A stretch of 32,332 nucleotides of DNA from Octopus bimaculoides (GCF_001194135.2 NC_068986.1:15807274-15839605); one strand, 5' to 3'; shown: positions 1,352 through 24,556, counted from the first letter of the stretch. Numbers and translations: made by a program. The notes: generated by a model from the letters alone, not told the origin.

Positions 1352-2272
1352 TTATAATTTCGTGTCAATATAATGTATATTGCGTCTGTTTCTTCTCTTG
1401 TGTTTGAAACACATTGTTTTTAGTATTTCACGAAATTTTTTGCTAACTATGAAATACAATACAAAGTTCAAACAATTATTCATTATAGCTAGCAGACCCA
1501 GTAATAATACAATGCCATCAAAGAAGCAATTGGAAAATATTACGAGAAAAAAATATATGGAAGAAGGAAATGTGGTAAACAAAAATACAAGATTTATAGC
1601 AATTACAATGTAAACTGTATTCCGATTTTGAGTTGCAACATTTCGAAGAGAATTCTGACCGAGGTTTGGTCGTTTGTGTAATTTATAAATCAATGTAACA
1701 GAGCTTACAGCTAAAACTACTGCAGGTATAAATGAATAAATGATCATAGAGAGCAGGAAAACATATTTGTAATTTTGTATTAGATTATATGTTACGATGT
1801 ATGCTACAACAACAGTTATAAGAAGACTGACGAGTACAATGTATGAGGTGAGGTTTATCTTAGAATAACTCCGGGAAAATGGGTTACAAACTGCCAAGAG
1901 CCGGTCAATAGAAATAGTGACAGTTATCCAGGAGGAATATATAAATAATACACAAATGAGCAGGTTGAGTGGATCATCGCCAAAGACTGATATGTTTGCG
2001 ATTGAATATTTCAAATAAAATGATACCCAAATGAACCTTGCAGAATATAACAAGATTAAAAAAGTATCGACAATAAGAAGACTAAGAAGATACGGATTAA
2101 TTTTAGATTGATGTATGGACTTCTTGCAAAATATTCCAATAGTTGTTAAATTGCCAATAATTCCAAAAGTTAACAATATTACTGAACCGTACCGCACAGA
2201 GTAAATGACACCATCATGTGTAATAGGAATTACGTAGTTACAGTTGTTAAATGTGGCTTCATTGAAATCCAT
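1352..2272 (-). CDS. intronless class A (rhodopsin-like) GPCR, 306 aa; orphan, FMRFamide-receptor/srw-like, candidate chemoreceptor
   Basis: Seven hydrophobic segments. TM1 GIIGN, TM2 LLIVD, TM3 YSSW..ISIDRLLAVCNP (DRY variant), TM5 YSFIP, TM6 FLFTTFP, TM7 NNCLNFVLY (NPxxY variant), helix 8 KKFREIL. The ORF is uninterrupted. Confidence 0.93.
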   Translation of the reverse strand: MDFNEATFNNCNYVIPITHDGVIYSVRYGSVILLTFGIIGNLTTIGIFCKKSIHQSKINPYLLSLLIVDTFLILLYSARFIWVSFYLKYSIANISVFGDDPLNLLICVLFIYSSWITVTISIDRLLAVCNPFSRSYSKINLTSYIVLVSLLITVVVAYIVTYNLIQNYKYVFLLSMIIYSFIPAVVLAVSSVTLIYKLHKRPNLGQNSLRNVATQNRNTVYIVIAINLVFLFTTFPSSIYFFLVIFSNCFFDGIVLLLGLLAIMNNCLNFVLYFIVSKKFREILKTMCFKHKRRNRRNIHYIDTKL

Positions 2273-3054
2273 TGTTACACATATATCAATAAATTTGGCA
2301 ATATTGATTATATTTAAGAAATATACACGGTAAAAAAAATAATAATAACAGGAATAACTTTATGTTGACGCACAAATATTAATTCACAGCGGTACTCCAG
2401 CTTGGTATAATTTTCTATGTGCATAGAGAGGTATGTGTATGGAGAGTGTGTGTGTATGTGTGTGTATGTATGTATATGCATATTAAGCACTTAAATCCAT
2501 GTAGTTGTAAGTTTGCCAATAACAATCATAAATAGAAAAACAAATCTGCTGTCATGACTGGAGTAAAATTTCAAATTTCCCGTGAAAGCCAAAGTCTAGG
2601 GGCGAACAAACCCTCCGTAAATGCAATATACATGATATTCTTAATAATCGTAGCTTAGCGTTCATTCCATTTTGTTTCATGAAGTATTCAAGACTATATA
2701 GGAGAGTCAACCAAATGTTCAGTGAGACTAATACAATATACAACATTGCACCATTGGTAGCTCCTGCATTTGCAAAGATGAAATATATATTTGTAATGAT
2801 GGCAGAGAGAAATAATGATGAATTAGTTATTAAAAGGTGATGTACGCAATTATGAAAATCAATCAATCCCATTTCTGTTTTCGTTGGGCGTGATGTGTGC
2901 ATTGTAGCTAGATCGAGTTGTTAAAAAAAATCTCAATGCTATGTACTCCTACTTTTGAGTGTAAATACTTAGATATATAGATTGCTAGATAGATTGTCAA
3001 GTATAAAGATCAGGAGATAGTAACATGAAGGGATTGGATAATTGGACAACAAGA

Positions 3055-3092
3055 AGTACGCATACACACACATACACACACACACACGCACG

Positions 3093-3150
<58 letters not shown>

Positions 3151-3330
3151 GATAGATAGATACACACATATATATATATATATGTTCGTGTGCATGCGCG
3201 CACGTGTGTGTATATGTGTAAATATATGTATGCGTGTGCATATATGTGTCTATGTATATATATATACTCCCACACACACATACACACACACACACACACA
3301 TGTGTATATATATATATACATATACATATA
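3055..3330. repeat. compound (CA)/(TA)/(GATA) microsatellite
   Basis: Directly visible. Confidence 0.95.
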
Positions 3331-3789
3331 TAGTTGAAATTTACAGAAAAATAAAAGACGAATGACAGGTGTATAAACAGCAAACAGCTTAACGCTCAGG
3401 AAGGGGAGAAAGTATTTTACGTTTCGAGCCTACGCTCTTCAACAGAAAGGAACACGAGGTAAAAAACACAGAAAATAATGAGACAATATATATATGGGCT
3501 AATTTGTGTGATGCATGGCTTTCCCGATAAACATTCTACTGAAGCTAGCAATATTATATTGGGTTGGTGCATAGTTGTTGCGGCTTTTTATTCAACCAAA
3601 ACAATAGCAACATGTAACAAAAACATATTTAAACGATTATTCCGGAGCATATTCACCATCTACATGGATTACTGCTTCCCATTTTCTTGGCACACAGTCA
3701 AACCGTCATTTAAAAATGTTCTTGTTAAATATTATTTGTTTTTGTTGAATTAAACTTCTTGAAATAAAAAAAAAAAAACAAGCCGCAAT

Positions 3790-4620
3790 AATTATACACC
3801 AACCCAATAGAACAAGGTCTTTTTCAGATGTACCGTTCAGCAGTTTTTTGTCATGTCAGTTTTGGAAGATATGTTCTCCCAGTAGTCACTCCAGGGCTCT
3901 TCTAACCCCGTTTCTTCACGCTTGATCTGTTTGTTTGCTACCTGAGTGCCTCCCCAAAATGATATTGTGTCATCCAATGGAGAGAAATCCCAAAACTTTA
4001 TGGTATCGCATTTTATATTGCGATACAGCGCTTCTGAGTTTGCCGCAAACTTGTGTTTAATAGATCAGTCGTAGAATTTTGTGCATTTATTTATAAAAAA
4101 ATTATTCATTTACTGTTCGAAGGTCATGTTTAAGAGGCATTCGTTTTCCCGTTTGTAGTATTTGTCGACATTTTGCATAAACTTTATATAATCTATTTGA
4201 AGGTTCAGTCGATGGCTTGGGATTTTACTATTCCCTTTGTGCCTGACAATAATGACTGGTGACCAATACATTTCCTAAATCTGTTGTGAGGCGTTTGGAT
4301 AAAGAACGAAGCCATTTCGGTTCTTCATTGTTGTTATGATCAAACTGCACAACACACATCCCTTGGTAAATGCTAATCATAACACAGTGTTCAAATGTTA
4401 CGAGTAATAATCTCTCCAAATTGTTCTTTGGCTACTTCAGTCCGTACGAGTAACATGTTGCCAGTCGGTTTTCTACTAATTCGGGTGATAATCGTTTTCT
4501 GATATAAATGTCTGTTAGTGCAAATGATGCAATTTTGTTTGAATTTTGCTAAGTGGTTTGTCATGTGTTTGTATTTTTCACTTGGGCACGCTTGTAATAA
4601 TGACCTCAACGCCATTTTGG
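3790..4620 (-). mobile_element. decayed non-LTR retrotransposon fragment, R4/Dong-like region upstream of the RT
   Basis: Minus-strand translation gives EPKWLRSLSKRLTTDLG and KHKFAANSEALYRNIK...DDTISFWGG. These resemble the PxWxxRLxxKIxxLRxDL and NxxFxxNxKxxYR...FW blocks of R4-clade ORFs. Stops are present. Confidence 0.45.
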
Positions 4621-4810
4621 ATATATTTATGTATACGTGTTTGTATGTGTGTCTGTGTATAAATATATATAAGTGTATATACATATATGTATATATGTGT
4701 ATATACATATATGTATACACACAGACACATATAAATACATACATATATATGTGTATGCATGCATGTGTTTGTGTGTGCGTATATGTGTGTGTATGTGTGT
4801 GTGTGTGTGT
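4620..4810. repeat. compound (TA)/(TG) microsatellite
   Basis: Directly visible. Confidence 0.95.
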
Positions 4811-5710
4811 AATCGGATAATAGTGAACAGTGTTGCCTTTCTTTTTATAAATAAGCTACACTGATGCGCTTCCTAAACATCAGAATTTATATCTCGAAGA
4901 ATAGAGAGCGACAGGGAGGGGAAGAAAAACAGGATATGGGAAAGAGAGAAAGATTAAAGAGTTTGACGTGTATACGTAGTAGATCTGGCGATCATTGTTT
5001 GACAATAATTGAAGGGAGATTTTCCGAGCCGGTTGCCTTTTATGATTGAAGCTATGGGAAAAGGGTTAATTGTTCTCTTGACATTATCCCTATACGCTTT
5101 ATTGTGTTCATTACTTAAACGTTCTACTACAAATATCAAACTTCGTGTAATGAGAGTAAAAATTTTGTTTAATCATACAGATCATAGATAATGATGTCGT
5201 TCTTTCTCTAACTAAAATGTGTAATCACCCGAAAAGATTAATGATAAAATATTTTATAAATATTAATTTCCTAATTTTCTCCTTACAAAGAAACATTTAT
5301 GCACAAAGACAGTCGTGTGTCTTTAGTAGTAAATTAGAACCAATAATATTAACAGTAAAATAAACATTCGATAAATGGTACACACGTAATATTATTAAGT
5401 ACAATCATTTTTAATAGCGAAAAATACCTGTATCATCAAATATCTGAGGATGGCCGAGAGTTCGAAATAAACGCACACTCTTCTTTTAGATTAATTGCTT
5501 CCACCAGTGGGATATAGCTATGCTACGGCAAAACCATCCGAACATTTACCATCCTCTTCTTTTTTTCTTGCGGTTGTTATGCAGTGAATAAAGGAATTAG
5601 AAACTGCTACTGACGAATGTATTCGTTGGCAGGATTTTGGCACATTGGCGATCATGGGTCGGACAATACCCGAGTCTTGGTTACGTATATTCGCATTCGT
5701 TGAATGATTT

Positions 5711-5971
5711 CAGTAACCATGATAAAACTCCGAGTTTCGGATGCCGAGACGAAACCCACGCCACCATCTCCATTGAGGATTGCTATGAAAATGACCGTTA
5801 AAGAAAGGGAAATTACTGTGTGGTTGACAGTTATTAAGAGAAAAGAGCTATTAGAATGACAGCTAAGTGAGGGAAAGGAGTGAGAGGTAAGGGACAATAC
5901 CATGAACATTTTTACTCCGGCGTGGGTTTCCGCCCCGGCATCCGAAACTCGGAGTTTTATCATGGCTACCG
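5711..5971. mobile_element. MITE, probably hAT-type
   Basis: TIRs of about 50 bp (5711-5762 and 5919-5971) starting CAGTAACC / CGGTAGCC. Flanked by aatgattt and aataattg, a 6/8 match consistent with an 8-bp TSD. Confidence 0.75.
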
Positions 5972-6002
5972 AATAATTGTCACACACACACACACGCACA
6001 CA

Positions 6003-6243
6003 CTCTTTTACTCTTTTACTCTTTTACTTGTTTCAGTCATTTGACTTCGGCCATGCTGGAGCACCGTCTTTAGTCGAACAAATCGACCCCAGGACTTATT
6101 CTTTGTAAGCCTAGTACTTATTCTATCGGTCTCTTTTGCCGAACCGCTAAGTTAAGGGGACGTAAACACACCAGCATCGGTTGTCAAGCGATGGTGGGGG
6201 ACAAACACAGACACACAAATACACATAAATATAAATATATATA
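6003..6243 (-). mobile_element. SINE family III, 3' half (head probably lies in the gap)
   Basis: (CTCTTTTA)3 tail followed by gtttcagtcatttgacttcggccatgctggagcacc...gtcgaacaaatcgaccccaggacttatt. A near-identical copy is at 26808-27020. Confidence 0.8.
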
Positions 6244-6345
6244 NNNNNNNNNNNNNNNNNNNNNNNNNNNNNNNNNNNNNNNNNNNNNNNNNNNNNNNNN
6301 NNNNNNNNNNNNNNNNNNNNNNNNNNNNNNNNNNNNNNNNNNNNN

Positions 6346-6437
<92 letters not shown>

Positions 6438-6572
6438 TGTGGATGCATGCTTATATGTATTCATTATCCTCTGTGTAATAACCTATTAACATGCATTTTT
6501 ATGGTTATTGGCTACAATACAGAACAGAAATAGACCTGGATCATATATAATTATATCATACAGTTTTTTGGC

Positions 6573-6845
6573 AGTCATTTTCGTAAGTTTGTCATTCGAT
6601 TTGATAATCGGGTCATTCAAAGTCGAGAAACAAAATTTAGCGCCATGAAATTAGTCAATTCAAATTCGTCATTCGGTCATTAAATTTCGCACTTTGGTAA
6701 AAAAATTTAGCATTTGCAAAATTCAAATTAAAATGCCCTTCGAGGGCATTCAAATTAGTCGGTATGCGAAGAAGCCTCTTCTCAAGCATTCAAATTCGCT
6801 TCGGTGTAATCTATTTAACACTTCGATCAATCAAATTAGCACACT
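6573..6845. repeat. degenerate array of a CATTCAAATT(C/A)G-like motif with an internal hairpin
   Basis: About 9 variably spaced motif copies. Perfect 8-bp stem AATGCCCT-tcg-AGGGCATT at 6732-6750. Confidence 0.55.
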
Positions 6846-7191
6846 AGCTCTTTTGGTTCTATCTCATCATCATTGTTATCATAATCATGTGTTTTCATCT
6901 ATTGCTTATGATTTAAGTACTCTGTAGTGCCCGTGTCTTCGCAATGTATTCTTTTATTATTACATGGTTACATGTATTTACTGTTAATCATTTCAGAAAA
7001 TCGTATTACAGTCTTTTCAATCTTTTTAAAGACACTCACAACAAAGAATGCTCATTTTCTTTCAGTTTGAATATATTATGTTGAGATATCTGTTCCTCCT
7101 TTGCATAATATATTTTGTTGGGATAAGTATATATTTCTTTGATTTTGTATTTTTTCTTTTATTGAGGAAATGGTGCTATGTACCTAAGATA

Positions 7192-7574
7192 GTGGAGGCG
7201 CAATGGCCCAGTGGTTAGGGCAGCGGACTCGTGGTCATAGGATCGCGGTTTCGATTCCCAGACCGAGCGTTGTGAGTGTTTATTGAGCGAAAACACCTAA
7301 AGCTCTACGGGGCTCAGGCAGGGGATAGTGGCGAACCCTGCTGTACTCTTTCACCACAACGTTCGTTCACTCTTACTTCCTGTTTCTGCTGTGCCTGTAA
7401 TTCAAAGGGTCAGCTTTGTTATACTGTGTCATGCTGAATATCTCCGAGAACTACGTTAAGGTTACACGTGTCTGTGGAGTGCTCAGCCACTTGACGTTAA
7501 TTTCACGAGCAGGCTGTTCCGTTGATCGGATCAACTGGAACCCTCGACGTCGTAAGTGACTGAGTGCCAACAAC
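7192..7574 (+). mobile_element. full-length tRNA-derived SINE, family I
   Basis: A box tggcccagtgg and B box ggtttcgattccc. TSD gtacctaagata / gtccctaagata (7180-7191 and 7575-7586). Paralogous copies at 18214 and 26377. Confidence 0.92.
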
Positions 7575-7589
7575 GTCCCTAAGATAATT

Positions 7590-8560
7590 ATTGATTTACA
7601 ATCTGGATAAGGAGACTTCGTCTAAGAGGATTTCGCCCTCTGTCTTCTGGCGGTTGAGGCAACTCGGGAGGTAGATCTGAGTGTGTCTATACAAATGAAC
7701 ACAACTTTCTGGAGTGATAGCGTCGACTTTATGCCTTACGAGCTGTTGTATGACAATTGCTCGAAATTGTCGCACATAAAATAGGCTGATTCATCCGCTA
7801 GAAATATGTTTGCGTATGTTCGGACTGTTCTCATCAAGAACTCCTCGAAAGACTGGTGAACCAGACCGAGTTCTCCCGACACTATCGGGAATATAGCAAT
7901 TATTGGATTATTATGCAGGAGACAAATACCACGGTCGATTATTACACCGTACCTCTTTTGCAGCTTTTTTTCCCACGCTGACGGTTGACAACTCAGTGAA
8001 TAGTAACGCCTCTAGGGGCTCATCCGAATGACCCCCTGATCCAAATGTTGTATCTACATTTATCAATGAATGCGCAATGGACGATGTCGTCTTCTTCCAT
8101 GAATCAATGCGCGTACTCATATCCAGAGTTCTTGGGACATTTGTTGCGTATGGGAAGTCTTCGACCAACTTCATAGTTATCACCATCCCATCTACTGCCC
8201 GTGAGACTGCAGACACAGAAACAGGCAACTTTCCGGGCAGTGATGCCTCTAAGTGCCTCTTCATCCGTTGAAGGGTTGTGAGGGGGTTGGCATCAATACT
8301 CACCTGAAGTCTGGCTCATATTTCCTCATCGGCCTTAACGTGGTGGTCACCTCCCCTGGGCAAATTGTGGCGCCATCCAGAAAGTAGGTAGGTCGCAACT
8401 ATAGATCGAGGACTACTTCTTTTAATGCCAAGGGTGTCTGACAGTTTCAGGTAATCGGTTTGATGTCCCTTGAAGTCGTCAACTAGCCTTGCCTTACCTT
8501 CGTCGGTATACGTATGTGCCTTCGCATGGCTCCATGATTGCAAATTGGTGTTAGAAAGGG
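7590..8560 (-). mobile_element. decayed IS630/Tc1-type transposase, interrupted by a GPCR fragment
   Basis: HTH region LSDTLGIKRSS..SIVATY..LPRGG..DEE..DANPLTTL..VSVSAVSRA..ITMKLVED.P..NVPRT. First catalytic Asp in FIDKCRYNIW (8062-8064), then RQRGKK. After the insert it resumes VSGELGLVH..FEEFL..YFMCDN (second Asp, 7769-7771). Confidence 0.8.
7883..7961 (+). pseudogene. 79-bp GPCR gene fragment (TM1-ICL1-start of TM2)
   Basis: Translates IGNIAIIGLLCRRQIPRSIITPYLFC versus IGNIAVIGLLCRKQMPRSNITPYLFC in GPCR2. Hand alignment to 13889-13967 gives 72/79 nt identity with no indels. Confidence 0.92.
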
Positions 8561-8779
8561 GGATAAAAAATGGCACTGATGCCGACCGGTTGCGAAGATT
8601 GCAATGAAAAAGATTTTCGAGGAGAGAAGAATCACCACATTTATTTTTTCCTTGTAAACATAAAATTTGCATTGCAAAACATGCCATTTACATTTGTCAT
8701 TTTCAACATTCACTTCATAGAATGTGAGTAAAAACACACATATATAATTATTGCTAAATTTAATAAAGTTATTCCGATG

Positions 8780-8782
<3 letters not shown>

Positions 8783-8865
<83 letters not shown>

Positions 8866-9359
8866 TATAACAAGATTAGAAGTGTTATCATGTGCATTGT
8901 TTTGTCTTGGTATAAAAGAGGGGCTTAATACCACAGATTTGCTTGGAAGTTGTTTGACCTTCAACAGTTGAGCATGTCCCTTGGGGTCTGATGATATGTG
9001 CATCTCCGATCATGAGCAGAAGTAGTGGGGGAGCATCATAGCCATATGTTAAGAGGAATTCTTTGGGGTTTGAATAATTCACTTTAGAAACATGGGTGTT
9101 TTGCTCAACATCCTTAAACAAACCTTATTCAGGGACCTTTTGAGCAGGATGGGCTACTCGACCTGAAGAAAATTCTAACTGGGCTCCACCTGCGAGGTCA
9201 TGCGCTGTTTATCTTGATATGAGATCACCATGTCGCGCACATATGGTTATGATGCATGTGCCTGGTGTACCCTTATCAGACTGGTAGTCAGGATGGGTAT
9301 ATTCGGCTTCGTACATTTTACCCCAGTGTCAATTTGATGATATGCATTGCTCTCTCACT
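8783..9359 (+). mobile_element. (AAT)n run plus body of a long tRNA-SINE (family V); no head recognisable
   Basis: The body (8873-9359) closely matches 11415-11930. Confidence 0.8.
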
Positions 9360-9459
9360 NNNNNNNNNNNNNNNNNNNNNNNNNNNNNNNNNNNNNNNNN
9401 NNNNNNNNNNNNNNNNNNNNNNNNNNNNNNNNNNNNNNNNNNNNNNNNNNNNNNNNNNN

Positions 9460-9707
9460 TAGTGACCGTGTTGGTAGTGGTAAACGAGAGTGACCGCTGT
9501 CCATGGAAGCAGCAGTAGTTAATTGGTTGTAGTAGTAGAGGTGGAAGCAGCAGCTGTAGTAGCAGCAGCAGTGGAAGCAGCAGTAGTAGTTGTGACGGTA
9601 ATAGCAGCAGTAGCAGAGACTGTTGGTCGTAGTAGTAGTAGTGGTGACCGTAATAGCAGTAGCAGCAGCGACTGTTGGTCGTAGCAGTAGTAGTAGTAGT
9701 AGTAGTG
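9460..9707. repeat. GTA/GCA-rich minisatellite (continues at 10526-10620)
   Basis: The unit gtgaccg..agcagtagcagagactgttggtcgtagtagtagt recurs on both sides of the TIR element. Confidence 0.8.
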
Positions 9708-10525
9708 ACGGATCTATTTTAAAACGGGGGCGCCAGTATTTTCTTAACGAAACACAAACGAAACACTTTGAAACTTGGGGCACTAGTAGAATGTGTCATA
9801 TAAAACATCTTTTACTCTTAGTCTTCTTAACAAAATAAAAAAGGAATTCGCAAGTTATTCCATGTTAAAGTTGTCGTATTTCTGTAATTTCAACCAATCA
9901 CTGACGTCTATTCAGTTCAAGAGAGTTACTGCTGGGCGGTCATAAAAATGTTATTCCCTGTGACATATTTCATCCGGTTTAATCGTAATTTATAAGCATA
10001 TATTGTCTATGTNNNNNNNNNNNNNNNNNNNNNNNNNNNNNNNNNNNNNNNNNNNNNNNNNNNNNNNNNNNNNNNNNNNNNNNNNNNNNNNNNNNNNNNN
10101 NNNNNNNNNNNNNNNNNNNNNNNNNNNNNNNNNNNNNNNNNNNNNNNNNNNNNNNNNNNNNNNNNNNNNNNNNNNNNNNNNNNNNNNNNNNNNNNNNNNN
10201 NNNNNNNNNNNNNNNNNNNNNNNNNNNNNNNNNNNNNNNNNNNNNNNNNNNNNNNNNNNNNNNNNNNNNNNNNNNNNNNNNNNNNNNNNNNNNNNGATAT
10301 ACACCGTTACAGCGCTAACTGTTTTCAACTGAATAGACGTCAATGATTAGTAGAAATTATCGAAATAAGACAATTTTTTACATGAAATAAATTCGAATAC
10401 AAAAATATTTTTCTGTTCTATAACATAAAATAGATAAGTATACGAAGTTTGAAAGTCTTTCGGTACCCAAAACACTACATAAAACATAAATGAAAACTGG
10501 CTCCCCCATTTTAAAATAGATCCGT
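9708..10525. mobile_element. non-autonomous TIR DNA transposon
   Basis: 30-bp TIRs acggatctattttaaaa(c/t)ggggg(c/a)gccagt with 28/30 identity. Internal inverted tgacgtctattcagtt / aactgaatagacgtca. AGTG on both flanks. Contains an N gap. Confidence 0.85.
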
Positions 10526-10721
10526 AGTGACCATCATAGCTGCAGTAGCAGAGACTGTTGGTCGTAGTAGTAGTAGTAGCGGGAGTGCTGTTTGCAGTAG
10601 TAGTAGCAATGGTGGTGGAGTTGTAGGATTCTTTTTTTTCTTTTTTGGATAACCAATATATGATTTTAATGTTACTGGTCCAGGGTATTTAAACTTGGTC
10701 CGAATTTTCTAATAAAATGAA

Positions 10722-11280
10722 GCTCTTTCTGTTTAGCCAAAATGATTTGCACCATAGTGTCAGACACAAACACCCGACGCACATCTCCCGGAACTCAGAG
10801 CTACACTCAAAAGTAGGAATTATCAACAACCACTAATAGACAATACAATCCAATGAGCACTTACATTAAATATAAAACACCTGAGACAACCAAAACCAAA
10901 AAGGGATGAAAAATTAAAAACCCTACCCTACATCTCTACTCACAACCCACTTAACAACGAGGCCTTCAACACCATATTCCAAAATATAGCCCTACTCAAG
11001 GGAGACCCAAAGATGAACGAAAGCCTCCAAACGTAAACAATCATAAAAAGCAAACGACAACCAACATCTTTAAAGAAGATTTTAACACAGGCTAAACTGC
11101 ACCCAATAACATGTGAGATGAAGTTAAAATAATAGAGAACACCACTGGAAAATATGGAAACTAAAAGAAGCAGCACATATGCTAGGACACAACAACCTCT
11201 TAAGTAGGCCGAGTGCAGATATGAATAGCATATGGGAACTTGTATTAAGGAAGGATAGGAGAATATTAGATCTATAGGCC
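10722..11280 (+). mobile_element. Penelope-like element fragment (post-RT linker fused to the GIY-YIG C-terminus)
   Basis: LAKMICTIVSD...ELRATLKSRNY...TLPYISTHNP.NNEAFNTIFQN...KRQPTSLKKILTQAKL, then DEVKII..HWKIWKLKEAAHMLG..LLSRPS..MNSIWE. Confidence 0.75.
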
Positions 11281-11306
11281 CTAAAATTCACTCCATAAGT
11301 ACCCAC

Positions 11307-11951
11307 GGGCATATGGCGTAGTGGTTAAGAGCAGGGCTACTAACCCCAAGATTTCGAAATCGATTTCATGAAATGACCTGAATAATAATGATAATAATAA
11401 TAGTAATAATAATAGGGCTACAGCAAATATTCTGCTTAATACCACAGATTTGCTTGTCAATTGTTTGACCTTAACCAGTTGAGCATGTTCCTTGGTGGCT
11501 GACGATATGGGCATCTCTGATCACGAGCAGAAGTAGTGGGGGAGCATCATAGCCATGTGTTGAGAGGAGNNNNNNNNNNCACGAGCAGAAGTAGTGGGGG
11601 AGCATCATAGCCATGTGTTGAGAGGAGTTCTTTGGGGTTTGAATAATTCACCTTTGGAAACATGGGTGTTTTGCTCAACATCCTTAAACAAACCTTACTC
11701 AGGGACCTTTTGAGCGGGATGGGCTACTCGACCTGAAAAAAATTCTAACTGGGCCCCACCTGTGAGGTCATGCGCTTTTTATATTGATATGAGATCACCA
11801 TGTCGCGCACATATAGTTGTGATGCATGTGCCTGGTGTACCCTTATCAGACGGGTAGTCATGATAGGTATATTGGGCTTTGTATACTTTACCCCAGTGTC
11901 ACTTTGATGGCATGCACTGCTCTCTCACTCAATAATAATAATAATAATAAT
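11307..11951 (+). mobile_element. long tRNA-headed SINE (family V) with internal and terminal (AAT)n
   Basis: Head atggcgtagtggttaagagc..ctactaaccccaagatttcgaaatcgatttc, an AAT run, a body of about 500 bp shared with 8873-9359, and an AAT tail at 11931-11951. Confidence 0.82.
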
Positions 11952-12165
11952 ATGAAGAAGATGAAAAAAACAACAACAACATCGAAAAATACCTTAGGAA
12001 TGAGAACCCTGATGAAGTCTGGAGGGTATATCAGCCGAAATTTGTGTTAGCAACAAAACTGAGGACAAATATCCGTCAAATGTAAATAATGTAAATAATA
12101 AACCAAGGTTTAGAAATAATACGTTTCTAAAATCTCTCAGACAGATTTATGCAGTAGTGATACGA

Positions 12166-12392
12166 TGAAGTAATCGCTTGCTGTCAACTTAATGTGACAG
12201 TCCCCTGCAGGGAATAATACTACTGTTGGTTAGACCTAAGTAGCTGCACCACTTCCTGCCGGCCTTGACATAAGGACACAGGAAATATGTCAAGGCCGAC
12301 AAGAATCGGTGTAGCTTCCTAGGTCTAACCAACAGTAGTATTATTTCTTTCCGGGGACTGTCACATTAAGTTGATAACATACAACTACTTCA
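12166..12392. mobile_element. foldback (palindromic) MITE
   Basis: Perfect 22-bp inverted repeat at 12184-12205 / 12353-12374. Nested arms aataatactactgttggttagaccta / taggtctaaccaacagtagtattatt and cggccttgacata / tatgtcaaggccg. Confidence 0.85.
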
Positions 12393-12411
12393 ATAAACCT
12401 AAGTGTGTTCT

Positions 12412-13045
12412 ATTTTTTCACCATCTGACCCTGACATAAATTTTTCTCGTCTGAGAAAAAAACAAATCATGTTCGGTTGGAGGGGATATTTGCGTTTGTT
12501 CAGAAGCTTGGAAGCGCGGTCTTTACTTTAGTCGTTGGTGGATTGAGATATAAATTGGACCATTTCTTTCTTGTATGAGAAATACTTCATGCTCATGCAC
12601 TACCTGCCTGATGAGAAACTCAAACACTACCACGTCCCTTGCAATGGACCTGAAAGACATGGAGTGATCATTGTCAATCATGGCCTGGATATGACCAACA
12701 AATTCATAAATTGATTTTTGTTTTTATCAAAAGCTTTCCGAGCTGCTGTACCTTCGTAATCACCATTAGACTCATCCAGTTCTTTCCGAATCCACTGCAC
12801 TGTTCTCAGATCGATTCTCAAACACTCTGAAATGTTCGTATTATAGCTTCCGGAGTAAATGTCAAGAGGTACAGCATGTCGTTTCCAAATTTCTGGCATG
12901 CTGAATTGCGTCATGGTGCTATTTCTCTCACAGACGGTGCCCAATGGACCCTACTATACTGTGTGCTCAACAAAATCAAACACAATCAATATGCTTATGC
13001 GAAATTAAAAATATAAAATGGTGACAATTTAAACATCACACGCTG
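12412..13045 (-). mobile_element. maT/DD37D-like mariner transposon, 5' part
   Basis: 5' end cagcgtgtgatgtttaaattgtcacc (TIR-like). Translation MTQFSMPEIWKRHA..ISECLRIDLRTVQWIRKELDESNGDYEGTAARK...PNM..FFSDEKNLCQGQM, with frameshifts. Truncated. Confidence 0.8.
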
Positions 13046-13135
13046 TGTTTTTAGGAAACAAACAATCAAAGGAAGAACAAATGAAAACTAAAATGTTACC
13101 AAAGTGTTACATATATTAATGCACAAATATATAAT

Positions 13136-14062
13136 TCAGTTTACTTCTTCTATATTAATGAGTTGAATGCCAGGTTGAAGGTCCTTTATGTATACTATTT
13201 TTCTCTTATTCGTCTTCTTACAACATATTTGCTTCAAGTTTTCGCGAAACATTTTACTGGCAACGAAGTACAAAATAAAGTTCAGACAGTTATTAGCACA
13301 AGCTAACATATCCAATGATAAGTATGTCACAGAATCCAAGCATCCATTTAGTGTTATTACGAAGTAGTAAATTGACACAGGGAATGTCGTCAACAAAAAT
13401 ATAATATTTATGGTAACAACAATGTAAATGCTGTTCCTGAATCGTCCTGAAGAGTTGTGTTGTAAATTTTGGCCAAGTTTTGGTTGTTTAAGTAATTTGT
13501 AAGTCATAATAATAGAGCTGATAATTAAAAACACTGCTGGTATGAACGAATATATTACAGTTGAAGCAAGAAAAATTTGTGTAAGGCCTTTTAGTAATAC
13601 TATTAAGATTGCATAAATTACGCAATTGCAACAGAGAAGTGTCAACATTACAATATACGGAATGCAGGGCTTAGGGGAAATATGGCGAGAAAATGGGCTG
13701 TAAACTGCGAGTAGACGTTCCATTGATATAATGACTGTTAACCACGAAGAATATATATTTATAATAAAAACGATGTAAATAAAATATTTACTGGTCAGAA
13801 ATGTTTTTCTCTGGTCCCCAAAAGGCACATAATTCATCATAATTCTTGGATAATTTCCCCATAGTGCAAGTAAATCTACAACAAGCAGGCAAAAGAGGTA
13901 TGGTGTAATATTCGACCGAGGCATTTGTTTCCTGCATAATAATCCAATAACTGCTATATTACCGATACTGCCAAAAATCATGATCATTAACGAAACATAA
14001 CGTATAGTAGTGTTATTTAAAACAACTGGTACACCATCCGATATGAAGCTACAGTTTGTCAT
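13136..14062 (-). CDS. intronless class A GPCR, 308 aa from the first in-frame ATG; paralog of 1352-2272; N-terminus possibly longer
   Basis: 7 TM segments. Motifs GSIGN, LLVVD, YSSW..ISMERLLAVYSP, YSFIP, FLLTTFP, NNCLNFILY, KMFRENL. Colinear with GPCR1. Confidence 0.93.
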   Translation of the reverse strand: MTNCSFISDGVPVVLNNTTIRYVSLMIMIFGSIGNIAVIGLLCRKQMPRSNITPYLFCLLVVDLLALWGNYPRIMMNYVPFGDQRKTFLTSKYFIYIVFIINIYSSWLTVIISMERLLAVYSPFSRHISPKPCIPYIVMLTLLCCNCVIYAILIVLLKGLTQIFLASTVIYSFIPAVFLIISSIIMTYKLLKQPKLGQNLQHNSSGRFRNSIYIVVTINIIFLLTTFPVSIYYFVITLNGCLDSVTYLSLDMLACANNCLNFILYFVASKMFRENLKQICCKKTNKRKIVYIKDLQPGIQLINIEEVN

Positions 14063-15142
14063 TTTGTATATTGTGCTAAATTCGTTATCGGTAAAATTTG
14101 GAAGTGTCCATGCTTCAATTTCAGAATCAACAGTCTCTGAAATATTACTTTTCTGCCATTGACAATGTTCTATGCGAGCAGTCGTTTTCAGTCATTTAAC
14201 ATGTAACACCAAAAGTACACTAATGAAAATATCCAGCAATGCCTCGCCTTATCAATCTCTTCACTTCTGTTACTGCTGCTTCTCGCAAGCATGACGGCGA
14301 TGGTGACGATGATGACAGTTATCTCGTTACTAAGATACTTTCCTATAAAGCAAATAAGGAATCGATTAATACTGTGGTGTGTTCCATTTACACCAATTTT
14401 GTTAGATATTGCCATCGGCTTAGTACTTGTAAAATAACGGATTCACAGAGAAAAACTAAATGGAAGGACTGCACGGGCACTATTCATAGATTTCTGAATC
14501 TATTACGTTGAGTATATGAAGTGTTTCATAGTTAAACTTACTTTTGCTGCTACTATCGACGATGCTGTTCTCGCATTTGTAACTACTGCAGTTGCTGCTG
14601 TTGTCTTTCATAACCAGCCTCCAAGTCGGTCTTCGTCAATTATAATTATTCTACACAAAAATACAGACATTGTCGTGATGATATATACCAATAGCAATAC
14701 AAAACTGTATCTACTGTTTTTTCCGTACATTAACAAATGGCTTTAGTGAAAATTAGCTGGAATATACATTAGGTCGTATGACTTGCGTAAATACTTGCTC
14801 ATTCATTTATGGGCGTCATCTAATGAGAATAATAATACTGCACCACCACCTACTACTTGATATAATTTCTAACGATGGATACACCCCAAATCCCTTTCAT
14901 TAGTGAGTGCTATTCATCATGTGATTTACAACAAACACTCATCAATTCTATCATGGAGAAATAAATCTCTAGCATACGGTAAAACTGAATAAGGTGGTTG
15001 ATAGCTTAAGACAGAGATTAGGGAAGTGTATCCTTTATTAATATAATTCACAGCATTTTACATTTTAAGACATTGACGAAATAAAATATAGTTATAAACA
15101 CATTCCTTGTCATTAGTTTAACTCTAAAGCAGAATAATTAGA

Positions 15143-21536: not shown

Positions 21537-22126
21537 ATGTTATGGTCAGCCAAAAGAATATCTCTGTCTAAGAAGAGAGAGACAGCTGCAGAAAGGGAAG
21601 CATACCAAGAAATGATCAGACTGTACACTACAAAAGCCAGAGCATCACAAAGTAATGAACAGAGGTATGCACAACTGACAAGGAGTAGGATATCCACAGC
21701 AGAACAAAGAGCAGTTGTAACAGCTCAAAGAAGCAACTTCTATGAAGCAGCTTTGAATTATGTTCTGGCAGTTCATTATGCAGATGACATTTATGTTTCC
21801 ATTGGTGCACTGCCAACTGAGTGCATACATAGTAAAGCAAGGAGGTGGCCTGGAGAGACACCTGCACTGCGCTGCAGTGGTGAAAAGGTTAAACTCCCTG
21901 CAATCGTCAACCTCCAGAACTATTGAAGAAACTGCTGCCATCAACTGACCAAGATTCCAAGCATTTCCAAAAAAAATTAGACAATAGAACGCTGCATTAC
22001 GGATAGCATCATTTGGAGCCACAAGGGATTTAACTGAGCCAGGATTCATGCAAACTTTCAAGATCCAAGGTCAGGTTTATCATTGGATTGTCTCACTACT
22101 CCTGTCTAACGAAACGCCAGAATCGG
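21537..22126 (+). pseudogene. Helitron RepHel N-terminal coding remnant
   Basis: YEAALNY..YADDIYVSIGALPTECIHSKARRWPGETPALRCSGEKVKLP, then after a frameshift PPELLKKLL...SKHF..IRQ*NAALRIASFGA...GFMQTFKIQGQVYHWIVSLL. Confidence 0.88.
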
Positions 22127-22559: not shown

Positions 22560-22675
22560 TAATCCTAGAATTCAAATGGTACTTATTTTACTACCCCGAA
22601 ACGATCAAAGGAAAAGTCTACTTCGGTGGAATTTGAACTCAGAACGTAAAAAGGGACGATATATCGGTAATATTG
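22560..22675 (-). mobile_element. SINE family IV fragment
   Basis: The reverse complement reads tttacgttctgagttcaaattccaccgaagtagacttttcctttgatcgtttcggggtagtaaaataagtacc. Confidence 0.7.
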
Positions 22676-23916: not shown

Positions 23917-24556
23917 ATTTATCTATTTATTTATTTATTTATGGGTTTCAGCCGAAGTGGCTGCGGTCATGCTGGAGCACCACCATGACTTTCCATCTTT
24001 ATCCTCTGCTCTCTTCACGTTCCTTCCATGGCTCTTCTCCCCCACCTGATATAGTCCTATCAAGAGTTTTGACGGCATATCTGGTGTATAAGAGAATTTG
24101 ACATCGCTGCCCTCAACTGTGTCTCAGTTCGAGCCATCGGTTCGTCTGGTATCGTGGAGAGGAATGTGTCGAGTTTTGCTTTGAAGACCTCTATATCCAT
24201 GTCTTTCAGGTCTCTCAAATGTTTTGGCAGGGCATTACAGATCTGAGGTCCTCTGAAATCGAGGCTGTTACAGTAACTTGTTCTTATGTAAGATGCAGTG
24301 GACGGAACCCATGGTACCACGCAGGGGTGACCTGTGCGGGAATTCGTGTAGTACTTGATGCCAAAGTTTGGTACCAGTCCTTCCAGAATTTTCCATATGC
24401 AAATTATTACATATCTCTCCCGCCTGCGCTCCAGGCAGTAGAGACCTAGTGCCTTCAGTCGCTCTCTGTAGTTCATCTGCTGGACTGTGGCGATCTTTTT
24501 TGTATAGTGACGCTGAATTGCCTCGAGTTCTGCTGTCCGGTTGAGTTTCGCTGTCC
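23917..24556 (-). mobile_element. CR1/L2-group LINE 3' end (ORF2 C-terminus, 3' UTR, (AATA)n tail)
   Basis: ELEAIQRHYTKKI...MNYRERLKALGLYCLERRRERY...FRGPQICNALPKHLRD...FKAKLDTFLSTIPDEP. Tail ggtggtgctccagcatgaccgcag..ctgaaac plus (taaa)n. Confidence 0.9.

Follow-up and report, generated by a model that had tools for sequence, protein, structure and literature searches.

Two short, neighbouring genes in the octopus genome raise the question of how a class A G-protein-coupled receptor (GPCR) can do without the loop that normally lies over its ligand pocket, and what kind of ligand such a receptor would serve. We have addressed this question in 32,332 nucleotides (nt) of Octopus bimaculoides DNA (GCF_001194135.2 NC_068986.1:15807274-15839605; the window, meaning this whole stretch), for which an original prediction, made from the sequence alone, had proposed a tandem pair of miniaturised class A receptors with almost no second extracellular loop (ECL2), a relocated disulfide and a possible chemosensory role. 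The two genes, here termed p1 and p2, are complete single-exon coding sequences (CDSs) on the minus strand, p1 at 1352..2272 encoding 306 amino acids (aa) and p2 at 13136..14062 encoding 308 aa, both supported by the list of open reading frames (ORFs), Pfam matches and AlphaFold2 models. They are paralogs, their proteins being 42% identical over the whole length (E = 1e-71), and lie 10,863 bp (~10.9 kb) apart, a distance that includes 495 N. The two intronless, same-strand paralogs that had been predicted are thus real, with a shared strand and spacing that rest on scaffold joins, and every peptide string quoted in support of them is present (YNLIQNYKY, LLKGLTQ, NNCNY, TNCSF, SNCFF, NGCLD, NFVLY/NFILY and FLFTTFP/FLLTTFP). 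Our reading, to which we give a probability of about 0.6, is that p1 and p2 are functional orphan GPCRs, members of an octopus-lineage class A family that is small, evolves rapidly and lacks introns.

p1 and p2 are class A GPCRs. Both match the Pfam families 7TM_GPCR_Srw (PF10324; p1 1.5e-12 and 47.9 bits, p2 42.7 bits, cut-off 22.2) and 7tm_1 (p1 1.7e-11 and 44.6 bits, p2 38.3 bits, gathering cut-off 30.5) above the curated cut-offs, in agreement with the predicted Srw/FMRFamide-receptor-like character. The best stretch of the Srw match spans only profile positions 179-318 of 319, mainly transmembrane helices (TM) 5 to 7 and, since Srw is a nematode family, the match shows kinship within a wider clade and not orthology or shared function. 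Class A landmarks are found along the entire length of p1, comprising N1.50 (N41), D2.50 (D69), D-R3.50-L (123-125), P5.50 (P183) and, in the C-terminal half, TTFP with P6.50 (P236) and NFVLY (269-273; N269, Y273), and the corresponding elements of p2 are N35, D63, E-R116-L, P175, P228 and NFILY (261-265). The micro-switches CWxP and NPxxY are absent, TM6 carrying TTFP (T at 6.48) and TM7 NF[VI]LY (F at 7.50). AlphaFold2, run on alignments of 30-32 sequences with secondary structure assigned by DSSP, produced seven TM helices and helix 8 for both p1 (predicted local distance difference test score, pLDDT, 84.5; predicted template modelling score, pTM, 0.84) and p2 (pLDDT 84.4, pTM 0.83). Foldseek returned 1120 PDB GPCR matches at E <= 1e-3, with GPR139 (7vug) as the top fold match, and GPR139 is also the best PDB sequence match (E = 1.3e-8 with p1 and 2.5e-15 with the family profile). 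Combined, these comparisons suggest a placement of the family in the Srw / FMRFamide-receptor-like / GPR139-related part of class A, and their TM7 motif takes the NFxxY form also seen in the nematode Srw/FMRFamide-receptor-like GPCRs (PF10324). An opsin identity was rejected, as position 7.43 in p1 is Ile263 and not Lys.

The extracellular face of both proteins is severely reduced. In the p1 model TM4 (141-164) and TM5 (168-200) are separated by only three non-helical residues, I165-Q166-N167 (1772..1780, minus strand; pLDDT 88 for the block 161-170), and in p2 TM4 (134-156) and TM5 (160-192) are likewise separated by three, L157-K158-G159 (13586..13594, minus strand; pLDDT 92 for the block 151-160). 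No Cys is present in either loop, as anticipated in the original prediction, which had TM4 joined to TM5 through a few residues and no Cys at the extracellular end of TM3. The latter point is also confirmed, position 3.25 being D99 in p1 and S91 in p2, and C107 of p1 sits within TM3 at 3.33. The remaining extracellular segments are short, with 4-5 residues in ECL3 and an N-terminal tail of 12-18 residues before TM1 in the two models. The C3.25-C45.50 disulfide is reported in >90% of class A receptors, the known exceptions being the melanocortin receptors, CB1 and MRGPR (PMC9287403); p1 and p2 lack it, which does not exclude them from class A, given this known class of exceptions.

Loss of the loop extends beyond the two octopus genes. 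On an alignment of all sequences, the interval from R3.50 to P5.50 is 59 residues in p1 and p2 alike and 58-61 in the close family (n = 15), in which not one member has Cys at 3.25. The next tier of homologs (P0016-P0023) has spans of 63-79 residues (median 68, most 63-70) and retains C3.25 together with an ECL2 Cys in 7/8 cases; P0020 has lost both canonical cysteines independently. The remaining 132 measurable sequences show a median span of 79 with both cysteines present in 121/132, a set which includes nine extra copies of family proteins that make up most of its exceptions. As the short loop is common to all 15 measurable family sequences, it is not an effect of chance or assembly; the near-absent ECL2 and the lost canonical disulfide are a family trait. 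A longer ECL2 supplied by an unannotated exon, which would have undermined the original prediction, is excluded, as the ORF is uninterrupted from the N-terminus to helix 8 in p1 and p2 and all relatives are of the same length. The next-tier homologs are also single-exon GPCRs (e.g. L002 10001-10900 and L014 10001-10954; ENA ERZ21867824, Logan ERR123...), with an ECL2 of about half the usual length. A comparison of repeats showed none in common between L002 and the window.

The family was delineated by an exhaustive search with p2 over representatives of 50%-identity clusters, which yielded 882 homologs, 15 of them at E <= 1e-30; a word-indexed protein search found little, one match with p1 and five with the family profile. 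At least five distinct paralogs (P0001, P0002, P0003, P0006 and P0009), less than 50% identical, originate from one project (SRR11869384-94), UniRef gives Octopus bimaculoides as the source of P0011, and P0004 is a UniParc entry. Public assemblies yielded no record for p1 in an exact look-up. Outside the family, identity to the closest relatives does not exceed 38% (P0016), and the named distant homologs are uncharacterised or hypothetical annelid GPCRs. Membership of a multi-gene family, as had been predicted, is therefore evident from the cluster representatives and the paralogs of a single project, and the tandem pair with its relic (see below), these paralogs and the low identity outside the family mark a lineage-specific expansion.

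Selection on p2 could be assessed through a 1,506-bp contig (L003; run SRR11869391) that is collinear with window positions 14408..12926 at 76% nt identity, flanks included, and encodes a protein 73% identical to p2. This collinearity and protein identity indicate that L003 carries the p2 ortholog of a related species. The ratio of nonsynonymous to synonymous substitution (dN/dS; Nei-Gojobori) between the orthologs, a check proposed with the original prediction, is 0.33 at a dS of 0.45, so p2 is under constraint by purifying selection. Between p1 and p2 the same method gives 0.28, at a saturated dS of 1.8. The best relatives of p1 are only 48-51% identical in protein and ~67% in nt, with no close counterpart among the cluster representatives; this suggests gene turnover, within a library that consists of 50%-identity cluster representatives only.

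These values also bear on whether the short loop and missing cysteines are simply lesions of decaying duplicates, an explanation that we regard as highly improbable and have rejected on the basis of dN/dS values of 0.28-0.33, not ~1. Copies do die at this locus, as an 82-bp p2-like relic lies between the genes, and W6.48 and P7.50 are replaced in p1 and p2; however, the full-length ORFs keep D2.50, R3.50, P5.50, P6.50, N7.49 and Y7.53, the loop span is held constant at 58-61 in 15 divergent sequences and the AlphaFold2 models are confident.

A second feature, a pair of cysteines on the extracellular side, is confined to part of the family. In p1, Cys11 (2240..2242, minus strand) lies in the N-terminal tail 30 residues before N1.50, in a conserved register, and Cys249 (tgc; 1526..1528, minus strand) lies in the 4-residue ECL3 (248-251), 13 residues after P6.50 and 20 before N7.49. 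In p2, Cys4 (14051..14053, minus strand) is located 31 residues before N1.50 in the sequence M-T-N-C-S, which is also an N-x-S sequon, and Cys241 (13340..13342, minus strand) occupies ECL3 (239-243) in the same register as Cys249 of p1. The Cys before TM1 and the Cys in ECL3 predicted for both proteins are thus present, and the pair is found in fixed register in 6/6 full-length subclade members (p1, p2, P0001, P0002, P0003 and P0006) and in 0/5 of the other full-length members (P0004, P0005, P0007, P0009 and P0013). The six carriers group together as a single clade in a neighbour-joining tree. This co-occurrence is consistent with a disulfide between the N-terminus and ECL3, without proving it, and a tether of 8-9 residues before TM1 would be long enough to reach ECL3 beside TM7.

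The spacing of such N-terminal and ECL3 cysteines resembles that of chemokine and angiotensin receptors, to which the original prediction had likened the arrangement. That comparison overlooked the vertebrate melanocortin receptors, in which the full set of features has its nearest counterpart. In these receptors ECL2 has 3 residues, C3.25 and C45.50 are missing and a wide open pocket accommodates peptides; MC1R, MC2R and MC3R carry an N-terminus-ECL3 disulfide. p1 and p2 are like MC1R-MC5R in being very small, with an ECL2 of ~3 residues and neither canonical cysteine, and they have candidate cysteines for a putative bond of the kind seen between N-terminus and ECL3 in MC1R-MC3R. In contrast, melanocortin receptors possess an intra-ECL3 disulfide and a helical ECL3, whereas ECL3 of p1 and p2 is a 4-5-residue loop that contains one Cys only, and the M5.50 and DPxxY of melanocortin receptors are replaced by P5.50 and NFxxY. 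The family profile gave 649 PDB hits, the best 60 of which include no melanocortin receptor, and none is found among the p1 PDB hits at E <= 0.01 either. With no specific sequence kinship and a different ECL3, the likeness is probably the result of convergence and not of membership in the melanocortin receptor group.

Other receptors share parts of this architecture. GPR139 (7vug) has Asp, not Cys, at 3.25 and an R3.50-P5.50 interval of 69 residues, counted from the printed alignment; unlike p1 and p2, to which it is ~22% identical, its ECL2 is ~10 residues longer, and it is a conserved single-copy vertebrate orphan/aromatic amino-acid receptor whereas p1 and p2 constitute a tandem lineage-specific family. 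MRGPRD/X combine a short ECL2 and the absence of C3.25/C45.50 with a shallow, solvent-exposed pocket and a C4.64-C5.33 disulfide that staples TM4 to TM5 (PMC9287403). p1 and p2 share the short loop and the missing canonical cysteines but have no cysteines in the TM4-TM5 region, and an MRGPR-type staple was therefore rejected.

Among molluscan receptors, p1 and p2 resemble the published lophotrochozoan and cephalopod expansions in being class A, tandem, fast evolving and without a TM3-ECL2 disulfide. The class A expansions specific to cephalopods are arranged in tandem, bear marks of positive selection and are for the most part expressed in tissues other than brain, testes and gills in particular (Ritschard et al. 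2019, PMC6408891). A survey of 238 lophotrochozoan genomes found that expansions generally lack the TM3-ECL2 disulfide, that their ECL2 is long, 25-30 residues, and that compensating disulfides are absent in cephalopods (Nath et al. 2025, PMC11886862). p1 and p2 differ on both of the latter points, with an ECL2 of ~3 residues and a candidate N-terminus-ECL3 pair. The Aplysia chemoreceptors AcCRa/b/c are rhodopsin-like, mostly intronless, possess a short N-terminal region and are spaced 9-13 kb apart, with a retrotransposon between one pair (Cummins et al. 2009, PMC2700072), and p1 and p2 are likewise molluscan, rhodopsin-like and intronless with a short N-terminus and clustered at a similar kb spacing. 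Membership of the Aplysia AcCR family was nevertheless rejected, as the AcCRa/b signature [FW]ITAF[IV]TFERCLCIA (FITAFITFERCLCIA, the ERC motif) at TM3 and the second intracellular loop (ICL2) is absent from p1 (SSWITVTISIDRLLAVCNP) and p2 (SSWLTVIISMERLLAVYSP), in which the same stretch follows the motif SSW[IL]TV.IS.[DE]RLLAV. In the literature searched, we found no description of a near-absent ECL2 together with a candidate N-terminus-ECL3 Cys pair.

Variation within the family is unevenly distributed. Alignment columns in the extracellular helix halves have an entropy of 2.01 bits, compared with 1.32 bits for those in the intracellular halves (Mann-Whitney p = 4e-10), and the third intracellular loop (ICL3), with its RPxLGQ motif, and helix 8 rank with the best-conserved regions. 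As the paralogs diverge mostly on the extracellular side of the helices and retain the intracellular side, ICL3 and helix 8, they appear to differ in ligand and to share one transducer.

The mechanism we propose for functional orphan receptors of this kind begins with a stripped extracellular face, in which the C3.25-ECL2 disulfide is gone, ECL2 is reduced to ~3 residues and TM4 turns straight into TM5. The pocket would thereby lack a lid and be exposed to solvent, like that of melanocortin receptors. The Cys before N1.50 and the ECL3 Cys would have arisen together in the p1/p2 subclade, forming a probable disulfide that would tie TM1 to TM6/TM7 and replace the lost TM3-ECL2 staple. Paralog-specific upper pockets would feed a single shared intracellular transducer, most plausibly through G-protein signalling. 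The genes themselves would multiply by local duplication and turn over, as suggested by the tandem pair with its 82-bp relic and by a p2 ortholog in a related species with none for p1.

Several observations weigh against this reading. Since the Cys-pair carriers form one clade, the co-occurrence of the two cysteines amounts to one evolutionary event and not to repeated covariation, and the N-terminus, on which the putative disulfide depends, is modelled by AlphaFold2 at a pLDDT of only 48-61. Extracellular halves are more variable in class A GPCRs generally. Finally, W4.50, W6.48 and P7.50 are replaced, leaving room for an unusual activation mechanism; these replacements are common to the more distant lophotrochozoan homologs.

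What such receptors would bind is a separate matter, and our best guess is a bulky or solvent-borne ligand, either a peptide or a waterborne cue. The chemosensory role originally proposed would make p1 and p2 external chemoreceptors of suckers, olfactory organ or skin, with the lidless pocket providing rapid access for waterborne ligands, and we consider this possible with the odds somewhat against it. Intronless, tandem genes that evolve rapidly (an ortholog 73% identical at dS 0.45 and dN/dS 0.33) with apparent turnover are in keeping with chemoreception, as are the concentration of variation on the extracellular side and a best Pfam match to the nematode chemoreceptor family Srw, and the lophotrochozoan class A expansions, generally without the TM3-ECL2 disulfide, have themselves been proposed to be chemosensory (Nath et al. 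2025, PMC11886862). However, expression of the published cephalopod expansions, to which p1 and p2 may belong, is found chiefly in testes, gills and mixed tissues outside the brain and is not specific to suckers. Furthermore, the family looks small, with 15 representatives of 50%-identity clusters across several data sets, and the Aplysia ERC signature (FITAFITFERCLCIA) is absent. Class A expansions are moreover reduced in cephalopods, and it has been suggested that alternative, ionotropic chemotactile receptors account for this (Nath et al. 2025, PMC11886862).

The melanocortin-like architecture favours a peptide ligand no less than chemoreception, since melanocortin receptors pair the same architecture with the accommodation of peptides. 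p1 and p2 might accordingly be receptors of endogenous peptides, diversified FMRFamide-receptor-like or GPR139-like paralogs with a melanocortin-like open vestibule. Peptide receptors, namely those for galanin, neurotensin, somatostatin and opioids, are among the closest relatives of solved structure after GPR139, ICL3 and helix 8 are conserved, and the cephalopod expansions fall within a molluscan neuropeptide-receptor clade (Ritschard et al. 2019, PMC6408891). We nevertheless find this assignment rather unlikely: a dN/dS of 0.33, ~40% identity between paralogs and no clear p1 ortholog in a related species are out of the ordinary for conserved neuropeptide receptors, the nearest homologs beyond the family are uncharacterised and reach 38% identity at best (P0016), and there is no specific sequence kinship with melanocortin receptors. 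In conserved neuropeptide receptors, purifying selection is expected to be stronger than a dN/dS of 0.33 denotes.

A bolder extension of the orphan-receptor reading, which we regard as doubtful, is that an octopus-lineage family has independently reinvented the melanocortin design, with intermediates still extant that retain the canonical disulfide on a loop of half the length, and uses it to sense bulky waterborne or secreted ligands, e.g. peptide cues from prey or mates. Few extracellular features of class A are as conserved as ECL2 and its TM3 disulfide, and receptors without them (melanocortin, MRGPR and cannabinoid/lipid receptors) are informative on ligand access and basal activity, lidless receptors being often constitutively active. 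If true, a second independent origin of a melanocortin-like face would provide a useful comparative system for GPCR structural biology, and the apparent intermediates, spans of 63-70 with the disulfide versus 58-61 without, would form a natural series for loss of the lid. The family would also supply a defined set of orphan receptors for work on cephalopod sensory or peptide signalling. Its practical weight is modest, as cephalopod and lophotrochozoan class A expansions are already recognised, and a lidless variant within these known expansions is a real but modest finding.

The integrity of the locus was examined in view of the N runs it contains. Eight are present in the window, four of them within the p1-p2 span (6244-6345, 9360-9459, 10013-10295 and 11570-11579), and all four are intergenic with no N inside either ORF. 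The 10-N gap at 11570-11579 is flanked on either side by an identical 48 bp (CACGAGCAGAAGTAGTGGGGGAGCATCATAGCCATGTGTTGAGAGGAG; 11522-11627), indicating an unmerged contig overlap across which the sequence is continuous, one 48-bp copy being spurious. The gap at 6244-6345 is bordered by (TA)n and (AC)n(AT)n microsatellites, and those at 9360-9459 and 10013-10295 have unrelated, unique flanks. As the gaps are confined to the region between the genes, p1 and p2 themselves are safe, whereas their same-strand order and ~10.9 kb spacing depend on scaffold joins.

The 5' ends of the genes were inspected in the same way. Between an in-frame stop upstream of p1 and its ATG lie 87 nt, in which no AG could serve as a splice acceptor. 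Paralogs P0001 and P0003 begin at M-x-N-C, as p2 does. The p2 ortholog was called with a 28-aa N-terminal extension (L003 292-375), but the corresponding upstream ATG is out of frame in the window (14063-14194), owing to a small indel directly after it. The conserved start of p2 is thus probably M-x-N-C and the extension of the ortholog non-coding. Combined, the absence of an AG, the shared start and the out-of-frame extension argue against a hidden upstream coding exon.

The window contains no further intact copy of the family besides p1 and p2, only the 82-bp relic at 7880..7961 on the plus strand, which was detected by tblastn and blastn and corresponds to codons of TM1, the first intracellular loop and TM2. 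Over its 82 bp it is 90% identical by blastn to nt 93-174 of the p2 CDS (codons 32-58), and tblastn gives 81% identity over 27 aa (E = 5e-10). Stop codons lie on either side and its extended translation is full of stops; it is not a gene and may have been left behind by a dead third copy or brought in by a mobile element. The relic overlaps a 130-aa minus-strand ORF (7911-8303) without a Pfam hit.

ORFs of 120-140 aa resembling fragments of mobile-element proteins occur at 7911-8687 (minus), 21537-21926 (plus) and 24060-24476 (minus), the last resembling the C-terminal tail of ORF2 proteins of non-long-terminal-repeat (non-LTR) retrotransposons; none of them has a credible Pfam match. Seven window ORFs other than p1 and p2, all of them transposon-like fragments, were scanned against Pfam without a convincing match. 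The window is AT-rich and full of microsatellites and gaps, in keeping with a draft cephalopod assembly. Microsatellites of the (AC)n, (AT)n and (ATA)n types are dense at 3064-3183, 4659-4810, 6346-6425 and 8783-8870 and in the flanks of most N gaps. The gaps at 6244, 19431, 24895, 27021 and 31308 begin or end in microsatellites, which probably explain the assembly breaks at these positions. A motif, …TTTGAACTCAGAAC[AG]TAAAGA…, is common to the ends of family-gene contigs from related species (L001 1-28 and L003 1-22) and recurs in the window at 22623-22650 with 96% identity, where it may represent the edge of a dispersed repeat, similar to a short interspersed nuclear element (SINE), that broke those assemblies.

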